Below, one piece after another: positions 36,230 to 44,343 of a DNA stretch of 64,000 nucleotides (its first letter is position 1; each line of letters opens with the position of its first letter). The notes below the pieces were generated by a model. That model did no database searches. It saw only the letters and a program-made list of their open reading frames with translations, and had not been told where the DNA came from. Source of the DNA: Ministeria vibrans ATCC 50519 (lineage: Eukaryota > Protista > Filasterea); the NCBI GenBank assembly GCA_943704425.1, contig CALSCP010001488.1, forward strand, positions 88,416 through 152,415, given 5' to 3'. A program made the translations under genes and the position numbers.

Positions 36230-39275
<3,046 letters not shown>

Positions 39276-39634
39276 GAAAACAATAATCTTATTATTGAAA
39301 TCATTCATTTCTGTGATCTTGCGAGCCGGTTCAGGGGCTGGGCTCTTAGCGGCTTGTGGAATGCGGGGTCTGATCTTTGAACCTGGGGGTTATTCCTTTG
39401 TGGCAGTTCATGTGATCGTAGCAGCGTGTTTTCTTTTCCTCACACAGCCCATGATTAATAATTAATTATTTTCTTAGGGTTAGCATTGTATTACTCTCTT
39501 TTATATGTGTATTAATATTTCTCTCTCTCTCTCTCCTTTTTAAGTAAACTTTTCGACTTCATTTATTCCTAATAATTATTAATTATTTACAATTTTTCAT
39601 CAATATTCAATAATTATTTTGTTTATGTATCAAT

Positions 39635-41911
39635 ATGGAGCAGTACGAAGACGCCCCACTCACGGCTGTCCATCGACACCTCATCAACGAAAAGCGATCC
39701 CGTACGTTGTCGTCGATCTGCCACTCAGCGTTGAATTAATAATTTGAATTTCTGCCGGCTTCTTCTTCTGCAGCAAACTGTGCCGCTGTGATCCCCCTTA
39801 GCATCCCCAGAGCAAGAAACAACCCCTGCTCGCCGTTGGGCATGTCTATCGAGCTTGAAGACTACTTTCCGCCAGTGCGTGTCTGAGATCGAAATTCAAA
39901 AATTCTCACATTGGATGTTCATTGGATGTTCGCTTGGTCTTGCAGATGCTGCAGGGAAAGCTGGACGGGCGGGTATGGAAGGAGTCTATTGGTCGGCTGA
40001 ACGACGCCGGAGCACGGCAGTCCACACGGTGAGGCGGGATTGTTGTGTCGCGGCGAAACCGCAGATCTCGTGCTCACCACTGTCTCTGCTGTGCTGCAGG
40101 TGTCTTGGGCTGTGGATGTGCGCGCTGTGTGTGGTGCCGTGCCACGGAGCGTGTGCCCTCCACCTCAGCGAAGAGACGCGTCTGGAGCACCACACGGCGT
40201 TTGTGCGGCAGCTGGGCATCGAGAACAAAGTGGTAGTCACGCCGCGCCGGGAGACAGCCAGGCGAGACCAGTTAAGTTGATTATTTGTGTTTGTCGCTCT
40301 CAGGTTCTTGCAAGTGCCGACAGTGAGCTGCGACTCAAGTCGTGTCTGGTTGAAAGCGACGGTTCCATCAACGAAATCTTCTGGCTTGAGCTGTTTGTTG
40401 AAGGGGAACATGGGCCCCCTGCGCCCCTCTACACTCGCTATGCCCCCGTCCTCGTCAAATCTCCTGCATCCGTACGCACAGTCTCACCATTTACCATCAT
40501 GTGATATAACTCTCCTGGATTTTTCTCTCACATCGTTCATTCGCACAGGAGACGGACAGAGACGCGCCGCCTCTCTACCACAAGTCAGAGCATCTTCATC
40601 GTTTGGTGCGCGGCAGTTTCCTCTCAGGCTTTCGTTCCTCCACTCACGGTACATACCCGCACACAATTGTCATAGAAGAGCTCACGCTTTGTATGCTCAG
40701 TGCGTTATGTGACGCGAGAGCCGACGGAGCAGGCGTCGCTGGACTCGACTGACAGCGGATGCGCAATGGCCGATCATGACCAGATGGAAGAGTCGCTCCT
40801 CAGACCTAAAACACCGTAAGATTTCTCTTTGACCCATCATTTGTGTTTCGTGCTGTGCTGACTGTGGGGGGGTGGGTTTGTCGTAGGGCAAATCCACGAC
40901 AGTTTCTTGTTGCAACTCCCGCTCGACTGCGCTTTACACCCGCCCGAGAACAGTAAGAAAAAAGGGAAAGAGTGTGAAATAAAGGTTGTGTTTGACAAAC
41001 TGTGCTTACTCTGTTTACTCTCTCTCTCTTTCTCTCTGTGTGTTAGATATGATGTGTTGCAGGAGACCAACCGGTCACTGCAGCGCACCCTGGACAGCCC
41101 AGTCTATGCCAACGGGACGCCCATGCCCCGTATGCCACTGCCCAACGTACCAACTCTCTCGGTCAGACTGTATCTCTCTCACGCACTCGTTGATTCGCTT
41201 TAGGAGGTTCCGACGTATGGGAATGCGGACAAGGGGTCACCTGACAGTGGGTTCGGCGACGAAGTGGGCGGACAGCACACTCCACCAGTGTATGCAAACG
41301 AGACAATGTGCGCAGTGCGGCGGATGGAGCAAGTGGAGGGGGATCGCAAGGGGTCTAAGTATGCCAACGATGCTCAGATGCAGATGTACTCGCCAGTGCG
41401 GCGCCACACCCACGAATCCACTGGAACAGTGTACGCCAACAGTGCCAAGGTACAGCTGTACTCGCCAGTGCGGCACACGCGGCGATACAGGGCCAGCGGG
41501 GAGTGTGACGGCGGAGACGAAGACGTCAACGATGACGACGACGAAGGCGCACGGGCTGCGGCAGCGACGCCAATCTATGGCAATGGCGGGTTCATGGACA
41601 CATCCAAGGAGTCGCCAATCTATGCCAATGACGAGAACCGCCACAACACCAGTGGCAACAGCAACACGGTTGCCAATAGTATCAACCAAACTCGTGTCAG
41701 TGGGGTGCACATTTATGCAAACCACGCTCAAGACAGCAGCAAGCAGCGGCAGCACGACGACTCCACCAACCTGTCAGCAGTCTCGCTCGCCCCAACCCTC
41801 TACGCCAACGGTGCGCGCAAGTCCCCACATCTACCCCCAAGCAACGCCACACCGTCTCCCGCCGTGCCTGTCTATTCAGAACAGTTACTTGAGGACGGTG
41901 TCACCTTTTAA
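39635..41911 (+). CDS. Erf4/GOLGA7/CHIC-like cysteine-rich hydrophobic domain fused to a disordered tail with nine Y-[AG]-N motifs; about 10 exons
   Basis: Hand-spliced GT-AG exons give MEQYEDAP...EDYFPP|MLQGKLDGRVWKESIGRLND...RCLGLWMCALCVVPCHGAC...FVRQLGIENK|VLAS...IFWLELFV...QYDVLQ...SPVYANG...|EVPTYGN..., ending GVTF*. One donor (near 40230) is uncertain. Confidence 0.65.
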
Positions 41912-42141
41912 CGCTGAATGTATAAAATAATTAAGAGATAATAAATTAATAACAATAATAATAATAATTCATAGAAATTAATAACAATAATAATTTAATA
42001 CGTGAAAGACTGAAAGTTCTGTTGAGAACTTGAAATTTAAGATTAATCACTCTTACGTTACAGCTTATTGTCTTATTGTCATCCAGGCTCCAGTCTGCTC
42101 TGATCGCTTCTGTATCGCCCTGCTCGTCTCTCCTGCGTGCG

Positions 42142-44343
42142 ATGGAAGCCTGGCTCGACCGAACGTGTCGGTCGTTGAAGGTAAAGCGCAGAACGAACGA
42201 ACGAACACTCTCGCCTGACCCACTGCCCGCCGCGCCTTGCCAGTACGAAGACCCCGTCGCCACCTGCACCGACGTCTCCATCTGTCTCACCCAGTATCCT
42301 CAACTCTTGGCGAAAACTGACGACTTCAGTAAGACTTTTTTTTTTCTTCGTCGCAACACAGTCTTCACATCGCACTGCGCACAGGATCTTGTCCTCTCGA
42401 CTTGTCCCACTTACTAATTACACCGTTTGAACGAGAAACAACGGGTTCATTCGCCGTGCAAGGGGCGAAATGAGCACCAAGTTCTTTATTGTCGACCCGT
42501 TTTCGCCTCCTCCTTCCTCTCCTGCCCGTCTCGTCCACGCCCTCGCGCCCACACCCTCACACCCACACTGACCCGTCGCTCCTCCTTCCCCTCCTTCACA
42601 GCCTTTGACTCGGGGTCGACCCAAAAGCTGCTGTGTCTGTCGGGGACCGTTCCCGTCATCTTTCGTGGTACGTCCCCACTCTCTCTCTCTCTCTCTCTCT
42701 TCCACTTCGCATCAATTTTTCCCTCTCTTTGTTGTTGGTTGCCAGGTGCCAAGTACAACATCCCCGTGACCATTTGGCTCAAGCCCATCCACCCCAACTC
42801 GTCTCCCTTCTGCTATGTGACTCCCACTAACACCATGTCGGTGGCGCCCGGTCGTCATGTGGACGCCAATGGTCTCATCTACTTGCCTTACCTGCACTCG
42901 TGGGCTCCTCGTGTAAGCCTCGATTGATCCTCCAAGAGAGATTGTTTGAACAAACGTTGTTTTGTCACATCCAGGTGTCGTCTTTGACCGACCTTTGTCG
43001 TACCATGTGCGGTGTATTTGGCACTGAATGTCCAGTCTACGCAAAACGTGCACCAACCGCGCACCAACCGCCCCCAGCGGCGCACCCTTCCACCGCGCGA
43101 CCTCCGTACTACCCTTCCACACCTTACTCAACGCCCTCCACGGCTGGCACGCCCTCCTACCCATACGGACCCACTTCGTCGCATCTGCCCTCACCCTTTC
43201 CCCCCACTGCCGGTACAGGTGTCGCTCCCGGCACTGCCTACCCCCACCTTCACACCCCCGCCGCACAGTCCCCACCATCATCATCGCAGCAGCAGCAACA
43301 GCAACCCTTCATGCCCGTCGCCGCCATGCCCAACCACACTGACTACCTCCCCCCGCCTGTGCCCTCCCCCACGCCCCCCACCAACAACAACGCCGGCGGT
43401 GGCAGCAGCAGCAGCAACAACAACAGCAACAACAATACGAGCCACAGTGTTGATAAAGACCAAGAAGCCGAAGATGAACTTACCGCACAATACCTCAAAC
43501 AGTCACAACAGTCGGCCGTCGAAGACAAAGTGCGTCGACGGCTGCGCGACGACATTGAGGCGGCACGCGCACGCCTCGTCAGTCTGCTGATGAACCGTGC
43601 TGATGTGGACGAGTACGCGCTGACGATCGAGCGCACACAAGCCAAACTCAACGAAGAAGAGGTACATCATGAATCGGATTGATCCATTGTGTGTTTTGCA
43701 TATATATTTATTTATTGGTTGCAGAGTCGTGTGAATGAGCTCGTTTCAATGCTCGAGACGCGCTGTGAGTCACTGGAGAGTGCATTGGCACGCGTAGAGA
43801 GTGTTCCCGACATCCGAGTGGACGAAGTAGTCACAACCACAGCGCCACTGTATGCACAGCTGCTCCAACTGGTTGCCAAGGTAACAAGAGAGTTAGAGAG
43901 AGAAACAACGTCATAGAGAGAGAGAAACAACGTGATAGAGAGAGAAACAAAGTGATATATAGAGAGAAACAAAGTGTTAGAGAGAGAGAAAAAAAACAAA
44001 GTGTTAGAGAGAGAAAAAAACAAAGTGATAGAGAGAGTGTGTGTCATGAGAAGAAAGAAACAGAGTGAGAGAAAAAGAGACAAAGAAAATGTTGGGAGAG
44101 AGAGAAAAGAAAAAGAAAGAAACGAAGTGATATGATAGAAACAAAAATTAAGTGTACTAACTGACTGGTGCACAGGAGTACGCGGTCGAGGACACCATCT
44201 ACCAACTGGGCAAAGCACTCTCACAGAAGCACCTCACGCTCAAGGCGTATCTCCAGCACGTCCGCCATCTCTCCCGTGCCCAGTTCATGCTCCGCGCGAC
44301 CATTCGAAAGGCCCGTCGCGTTGCAAACCTCCCCGATGTATAA
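42142..44343 (+). CDS. TSG101: ESCRT-I subunit TSG101/Vps23
   Basis: UEV domain LLCLSGTVPVIFRG|AKYNIPVTIWL...GRHVDANGLIYLPYLHSW, Pro-rich region, SAVEDKVRRRL coiled coil, steadiness box APLYAQLL...EYAVEDTIYQLG...RHLSRAQFMLRA. Confidence 0.95.
43885..44135. repeat. GA-rich repeat with AAACAAAGTG(A/T)TA units, TSG101 intron
   Basis: Several degenerate copies of the same unit seen at 36.7 kb. Confidence 0.85.

Follow-up and report, generated by a model that had tools for sequence, protein, structure and literature searches.

Several transmembrane or palmitoylated adaptors of vertebrate lymphocytes, namely LAT, NTAL/LAB, PAG/Cbp and LIME, have no catalytic or modular domain and combine a Cys-bearing membrane anchor with a long disordered cytoplasmic tail that carries many tyrosines, several of them in phosphotyrosine-x-Asn (pY-x-N) motifs. 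FRS2, Gab, IRS and Dok are likewise kinase-less, YxN-multivalent platforms, which give receptor tyrosine kinases additional room for docking. Frs2 and Dof have been reported absent from unicellular holozoans (PMC7260276), and it is thus unclear how the very large receptor tyrosine kinase repertoires of these organisms reach downstream pathways. Here we analyse a ten-exon gene of the filasterean Ministeria vibrans ATCC 50519, located on the plus strand of a window of 64,000 nucleotides (assembly GCA_943704425.1, contig CALSCP010001488.1, positions 88,416 to 152,415), which may encode a membrane-tethered docking protein with nine Y[AG]N motifs in its tail. Positions given without a contig are those of the window.

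In its sequence features the candidate resembles the LAT-type scaffolds: it has no recognised catalytic or modular domain, a Cys-rich hydrophobic stretch and a long, Tyr-motif-bearing, low-complexity tail. Unlike them, it comes from a protist and shows no sequence similarity to any of the four; its putative anchor lies ~105 residues from the N-terminus, whereas theirs follows a short ectodomain, and its cysteines are within the hydrophobic stretch, whereas theirs are in a juxtamembrane CxxC. It differs from FRS2, Gab, IRS and Dok in having no myristoylation signal (the N-terminus is MEQYED) and no PH or PTB domain in a Pfam search of all exons.

The original prediction placed nine YxN motifs in the tail, and translation of exons 9 and 10 recovers each of them at the Tyr codon listed in Table 1. 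In order, they read PVYAN, PTYGN, PVYAN, SKYAN, TVYAN, PIYGN, PIYAN, HIYAN and TLYAN, with I, V or L at −1 in seven of the nine, as had been claimed. Y[AG]N thereby takes up 9 of the 14 tyrosines within 268 residues, a number reached in none of 200,000 composition-preserving shuffles. The spacers had been described as mostly unrelated, which is correct in that other likeness is limited to the motif, but two local duplications hold four of the nine motifs: the module YAN-x6-YSPVR (Table 1) and a 21-nucleotide module at 41568 and 41613 (90% identity). Further tyrosine motifs in the protein are YDVL, two YSPV, two PPxY (PPLY and PPVY) and a C-terminal YSEQ.

The duplicated YSPV module allows another reading of the same architecture, in which the protein has a PAG/Cbp-like inhibitory role, the M/L-Y-S-P-V-R motif recruiting Csk to restrain Src-family kinases and YxN being secondary. 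The SH2 domain of Csk prefers pY-[S/T/A]-x-[V/I/M], e.g. pYSSV in PAG, the module has been both duplicated and kept, and a Csk-like gene (L016) is present in the genome. However, nine YxN motifs stand against two YSPV, and the known Csk-SH2 consensus has no Pro at +2. We therefore regard an inhibitory role of this kind as very unlikely.

The motif is not confined to this gene. The genome (29.7 Mb, 2,860 contigs) was searched with a DNA pattern of three back-translated Y[AG]N spaced 12–22 residues apart, the same pattern read backwards serving as control. The pattern gave 34 matches at nine loci, compared with 3 for the control. At seven of these loci the array lies 0.3–0.7 kb upstream of a match to the tyrosine kinase family PF07714 on the same strand, and each encodes, in a single open frame, a receptor with an ectodomain or seven-transmembrane region, a transmembrane segment, 3–23 Y[AG]N motifs and a tyrosine kinase. 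The eighth locus (C713:7600-11500; L067:2103-5999) is kinase-less and has, on the N-terminal side of PH-PH-MyTH4-RA, 20 Y[AG]N in alternation with YAxP, and the ninth is the ten-exon gene itself. The consensus of the 91 motifs in the receptor-kinase and PH-MyTH4 arrays is A/P/V at −2, V/I/T/A/M at −1, G/A at +1, N at +2 and R/G at +3, and the nine tail motifs match it. Since the receptor arrays sit between the transmembrane segment and the kinase, Y[AG]N appears to be a cytoplasmic, kinase-associated docking motif used genome-wide. Sharing of the motif with the arrays of at least seven receptor kinases is the strongest support for phosphotyrosine docking by the tail, which would be the most economical reading. 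The candidate also shares with these arrays, and with HER3-type dead-kinase docking receptors, the array form and the cytoplasmic low-complexity setting. What sets it apart is the lack of an ectodomain, of a classical transmembrane-plus-stop-transfer segment and of any kinase or pseudokinase domain.

YxN, YxxM and YxxP are the ligand classes of Grb2-, p85- and Crk-type SH2 domains, respectively. In the array on contig C313, YANG alternates with EYAMMD (YxxM); the gene (C313:179614-182760; L037) encodes an EGF-repeat receptor kinase with a juxtamembrane tandem 22-residue unit, TQATYANGVGQAGGEYAMMDPR, in which YxN and YxxM take turns. At C155:1-2828 (L036) and C1645:900-5000 (L070), a single frame combines a GPS and a secretin/adhesion-type seven-transmembrane region (PF00002, E 1.6e-29) with a tyrosine kinase (PF07714, E 9e-74) and a YGN array, and the fusion of an adhesion-type G-protein-coupled receptor (GPCR) to a tyrosine kinase thus occurs twice in the genome. 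The receptor at C2371:46000-50700 (L071) has five YANP/YANL motifs and a kinase with HGD...SRS in place of HRD...ARN, and may be a pseudokinase docking receptor. Finally, the C713 protein has a Gab/PLEKHH-like docking architecture; it is a second kinase-less carrier of Y[AG]N and, compared with the candidate, stands closer to Gab.

The ~170 N-terminal residues of the candidate contain no recognised domain, and the remaining ~375 are of low complexity. A 19-residue Kyte-Doolittle mean above 1.6 is reached nowhere in the protein but in CLGLWMCALCVVPCHGACAL (1.81), which has six Cys in 20 residues. The original prediction likened this region to the Erf4/GOLGA7/CHIC proteins, and the N-terminal strings on which it relied are all present: FPP|MLQGKLDGRVWKESIGRLND spans the junction of exons 2 and 3, CLGLWMCALCVVPCHGAC opens exon 4 and IFWLELFV lies in exon 5. 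What recalls these proteins in the candidate is a small N-terminal part in which a G-x-x-x-x-F/L-x-x-x-F/Y-P-P block precedes K-x-S/T-I/V-x-R-L/I-N and then a Cys-containing hydrophobic stretch. Such a central segment is a hallmark of the Erf4 family, and its palmitoylation in the candidate is a prediction.

Profile searches do not bear out membership of this family. No exon matched PF10256 (gathering score 29.3 bits) even at E<=10 when Pfam was searched exon by exon, exons 2–5 yielding no family at all, and the window is absent from the matches of a genome-wide PF10256 scan. As a positive control we used the canonical Erf4/GOLGA7 gene of the same genome (L001; C1883:27934-31047, minus strand, four exons), three of whose four exons match PF10256, collinearly, with 15.0, 15.5 and 17.5 bits (E 0.004–0.025). 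Because these exons match singly, the exon-wise search is able to detect a genuine family member. The exons of the two genes were also compared by local alignment, with significance taken from 5,000 shuffles. Exon 2 (LGMSIELEDYFPP) aligns with exon X1 of L001 (VGMGVRFDPSYPP; score 31, p=0.006) and exon 3 (WKESIGRLNDAGAR) with exon X2 (FKKTVREINSIMAK; score 19, p=0.04), both at the homologous position, so that two N-terminal blocks occur in the right order relative to the genome's own Erf4 gene. Neither the hydrophobic segment (p=0.26) nor the C-terminal block (...EN..[IV]Y.P.GL.L..P...G...LEI; exon 5 against exon X4, score 14, p=0.97) gives a significant alignment with its L001 counterpart. 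FVRQLGIENK in exon 4 recalls FVSVENERV of L001, with a score of 24 given here without a shuffle comparison, and BLASTP between the exons of the two genes returned nothing at E<=100. Likeness to the Erf4/CHIC proteins thus comes down to weak pairwise similarity in two N-terminal blocks. The N-terminal pattern seems nearer to that of animal CHIC proteins (CHIC2), which is a lead and not a test, and we know of no Erf4/GOLGA7/CHIC member with a 375-residue tail of tyrosine motifs. Judged from these sequence comparisons, the chances that the candidate is a true Erf4/CHIC homologue stand near even; a link to Ras palmitoylation is conjectural, far less probable than the homology and well below even.

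The gene model is a plus-strand chain of 545 codons (coding sequence 1,638 nucleotides), for which three plus frames were read in the window. Its nine introns are all GT..AG, 52–94 nucleotides long (71–77 in five of the nine), with pyrimidine-rich acceptors and consistent phases, and each of them, if read through, leads to an in-frame stop or a frameshift. Codon-usage log-odds, for which 40 long open frames from other parts of the window served as training set, are above zero for the model frame in all ten exons, summing to ~65 bits; the model frame scores highest in eight, is tied in exon 3 and is beaten by an antisense frame in exon 4. The interior of the locus has neither an AT-rich spacer of the intergenic type nor a poly-A signal, and an AATAAA lies ~30 nucleotides downstream of the TAA of exon 10. 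Moreover, the frame of exon 9 has no ATG of its own, and the coding sequence must therefore enter from upstream exons. The junction of exons 9 and 10 (41146|41204, GT..AG, 57 nucleotides skipped) is present on the plus strand in an RNA contig from run X5. The same contig corrects the donor of exon 9, wrongly placed at 41161 in the original prediction, to 41146|41147, and the tail accordingly reads ...PLPN|EVPTYGN.

Table 1. Exons, tail motifs and antisense transcript of the ten-exon locus (window positions).
Feature	Position	Strand	Description
Exon 1	39635..39701	+	MEQYEDAPLTAVHRHLINEKRS; start codon is the first ATG past an in-frame stop; A at −3, G at +4; donor GTACGT; no RNA support
Exon 2	39774..39874	+	ends ...LGMSIELEDYFPP; acceptor cttcttcttctgcag, donor GTGCGT; codon log-odds positive
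Exon 3	39946..40028	+	MLQGKLDGRVWKESIGRLNDAGARQST; canonical splice sites
Exon 4	40100..40229	+	presumed membrane anchor, Cys-rich and hydrophobic, in codons 1–20 (40101-40160): CLGLWMCALCVVPCHGACAL
Exon 5	40304..40471	+	IFWLELFV, then PPAPLYTRYAPV; model frame scores best (11.9 bits)
Exon 6	40549..40648	+	linker with PPLY motif; canonical sites; coding score positive
Exon 7	40701..40815	+	linker; canonical sites; coding score positive; in-frame Met codons
Exon 8	40887..40952	+	linker; canonical sites; coding score weakly positive (2.1 bits)
Exon 9	41047..41146	+	YDVL and first PVYAN; donor junction 41146|41204 seen in RNA
Exon 10	41204..41911	+	tail: eight Y[AG]N, two YSPVR, acidic run, terminal PVYSEQLL; 21.5 bits; TAA 41909-41911
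Nine Y[AG]N	41105..41809	+	Tyr codons 41105, 41216, 41291, 41360, 41432, 41576, 41621, 41714, 41801
Duplicated module YAN-x6-YSPVR	41359..41474	+	44-nucleotide direct repeat 41359-41402 / 41431-41474; copies 72 nucleotides apart; 82% identity
Spliced antisense RNA	39889..41937	-	overlaps exons 3–10; introns 40806-40862 and 40927 (or 40932)-41009; run X1 contigs

The logic of the gene, the enrichment of the motif, its occurrence in cytoplasmic regions of receptors and the presence of a phosphotyrosine toolkit (below) are direct observations. From them we infer the membrane attachment of the protein, the topology of its tail, the phosphorylation and a reader protein. In the mechanism that we propose, the 20-residue, six-Cys hydrophobic stretch would hold the protein at the cytoplasmic face of the membrane by hairpin insertion, S-palmitoylation or both, and the ~375-residue tail with its nine [P/T]-[V/I/L/T]-Y-[A/G]-N motifs would be exposed as a low-complexity docking region. 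Since receptor tyrosine kinases of this genome carry the same Y-[G/A]-N arrays, the tail would most likely be phosphorylated by receptor or Src/Abl-type kinases. Once phosphorylated, it could act as a multivalent platform for an SH2 protein preferring Asn at +2, following the logic of LAT, NTAL, PAG and FRS2, reached independently. We consider the chances evenly balanced that the gene encodes such a membrane-tethered, kinase-less docking protein, phosphorylated on the motif of the receptor arrays and recruiting an Asn+2-selective SH2 protein.

Several observations weigh against this proposal; they concern topology, the reader, transcription and conservation. The hydrophobic stretch is preceded by an Arg-rich and followed by an acidic region, a distribution that favours an N-in/C-out orientation if the stretch is a true single transmembrane helix, and N-x-S/T sequons in the tail are in mild excess (7 against 3.0 expected, p=0.02). 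These features would suit a type II protein with an extracellular N-glycosylated stalk, in which the Y[A/G]N repeats do not serve as phosphotyrosine docks. The repeats might equally fail to be docks in a cytosolic protein, if its tyrosines mediate self-association or if it is bound through PPxY by WW domains of the Nedd4 type; both PPLY and PPVY are present, and no reader was turned up by the SH2/SH3 survey described below. However, the same arrays lie between transmembrane segment and kinase in seven receptors, where they are unambiguously cytoplasmic and alternate with YxxM or YxxP. Furthermore, Asp, Glu, Arg and His abound in the tail, which has an acidic run and is unlike mucin, and the middle of the hydrophobic stretch holds Pro, His and Gly, as in re-entrant or lipidated segments. 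A role of the repeats other than phosphotyrosine docking is, in our estimate, improbable.

As for the reader, the toolkit that docking presupposes is present. Tyrosine kinases and SH2 domains are abundant in the genome, with at least 169 exon-wise matches to PF07714 for the former and 33 matches for the latter, the recognised SH2 genes being Src-, Csk-, Abl-, Crk-, Nck-, Vav-, PLC-gamma-, RasGAP- and chimaerin-like. Y-x-N is the ligand form of the Grb2 SH2 domain, and it is this form that occurs nine times in the tail and also in the cytoplasmic regions of the receptor kinases. Intersecting the SH2 and SH3 matches, in an exon-wise search of a 2,860-contig assembly that does not prove absence, revealed no Grb2 orthologue: SH3-SH2-SH3 genes did not come to light, and SH3 flanks at most one side of each of the 33 SH2 matches. 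The preference of the Grb2 SH2 domain for Asn at +2 depends on Trp at position EF1, a residue that all 13 SH2 domains visible in full lack, and an SH2 is missing from the vicinity of 20 additional SH3 loci. Individual candidates for Grb2 were ruled out as Nck (L003), Crk (L006), Abl (L007), Csk (L016), chimaerin (L019) and Vav (L021); the gene on C2235 encodes SH3-linker-SH3 without SH2, and that on C1260 SH3 domains only. Grb2 has been reported in choanoflagellates (PMC7260276), and a preprint lists a GRB2 gene for M. vibrans (PMC12132279).

Regarding transcription, the exon chain from the N-terminus to the tail is coherent in its splice signals, phases and codon usage, as originally proposed, but RNA confirms one of its nine junctions; the other eight have no RNA support and follow from sequence logic. 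In addition, the 52-nucleotide intron 6 is retained in a contig from run X6. The anchor and the tail could accordingly belong to separate proteins, either because the model is wrong in the weak exons 6–8 or because an internal start at a Met codon of exon 7 gives a soluble, tail-only product. Such a split would fit with the position of the sole RNA-seen junction, at exons 9 and 10, with the low score of exon 8, with the in-frame Met codons of exon 7 and with intron 6, where read-through hits a stop. It fits poorly with the lack of an internal AT-rich spacer or poly-A signal, with phases that are all consistent and a positive score of every exon in the model frame, and with the missing ATG in the frame of exon 9; moreover, the unspliced contigs may derive from an antisense RNA. 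We think it unlikely that the anchor and the tail are separate.

The antisense RNA was revealed by run X1, which belongs to a 2025 study comprising four similar runs and appears to be poly-A RNA. Contigs of this run span only 39889-41937, leaving exons 1 and 2 and the flanking intergenic DNA uncovered; they retain the plus-strand introns and contain only minus-type junctions (CT..AC on plus, i.e. GT..AG on minus). The antisense RNA is dominant over sense mRNA in these samples, and if run X1 is indeed poly-A RNA, the sense mRNA appears to be rare in them. The antisense introns have good donor and acceptor signals on the minus strand, the second of them with two acceptors 5 nucleotides apart. 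One could therefore suppose that the plus frame is decaying or unexpressed and that the spliced antisense RNA is the functional product of the locus. Against this, the longest open reading frame (ORF) of the antisense RNA has 141 residues and no Pfam match, and Rfam gave no match within 39000-42500; minus-strand ORFs of 141 and 172 residues were rejected as coding, having no Pfam match and a codon pattern of the antisense type. By contrast, the plus frame is intact for 545 codons with correct splice signals, and a plus junction is present in run X5. Polymorphism points the same way. Run X9, which is plainly DNA and not RNA, departs from the window at two positions of exon 5 (40399 and 40405). 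Both are synonymous third positions in the plus frame; in the largest minus-strand ORF they would be first positions, and the changes non-synonymous. A genomic, tail-bearing metagenome scaffold (L030) differs only by two changes within intron 8. All four differences from other samples are thus either synonymous in exon 5 or intronic, two of each, and spare non-synonymous plus-strand sites. That the antisense RNA is the product that matters here seems to us quite remote.

The antisense RNA may start in the AT-rich spacer that the locus has in common with a downstream plus-strand gene. On the other side, a divergent neighbour on the minus strand (39054-39308, start at 39308) has a PH-domain-like N-terminus and shares a 327-nucleotide AT-rich promoter region with the ten-exon gene.

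A HMMER search with the tail exon against 1.84 billion representative proteins returned as the only significant relative a fragment of its own ORF (P0001, E 9e-129), which derives from a 1-kb metagenome scaffold, genomic and not spliced; a second match, to a 1,229-residue protein (E 3e-6), has no aligned stretch. Exons 4 and 5 matched only themselves in the own genome, with no paralogue, exon 5 gave no candidate when searched as a region of its stop-free frame, and neither exon had an informative match in the ESM Atlas. Pfam returned no match at E<=10 for nine in-frame exon translations, and a match of exon 4 to a GPCR loop in a PDB sequence search (E 1.3) was taken as chance. With no detectable homologue or paralogue of the tail or the N-terminal exons, conservation cannot be judged.

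The fullest form of the idea would be a fusion between a divergent palmitoyl anchor of the Erf4/CHIC type and an array of nine pY-[A/G]-N sites, forming a kinase-less, raft-like scaffold that is phosphorylated by receptor kinases and concentrates at the membrane a Grb2-type adaptor and, by way of this adaptor, a Ras exchange factor. This version is doubtful. If it were true, the gene, together with the C713 protein and the receptor arrays, would imply that multivalent docking of the LAT/FRS2 type arose, or was independently invented, before animals. The candidate itself is small and its motif grammar is clear; its wider interest lies in being part of a genome-wide Y-[G/A]-N docking grammar. 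In this genome, [V/I/T]-Y-[G/A]-N arrays occur in many receptor kinases and also in at least two proteins that have no kinase, the candidate with its presumed Cys-rich anchor and the PH-domain protein C713. This suggests a testable wiring hypothesis for pre-animal phosphotyrosine signalling, in which there would be one dominant pY-x-N reader, with separate scaffolds multiplying its sites.

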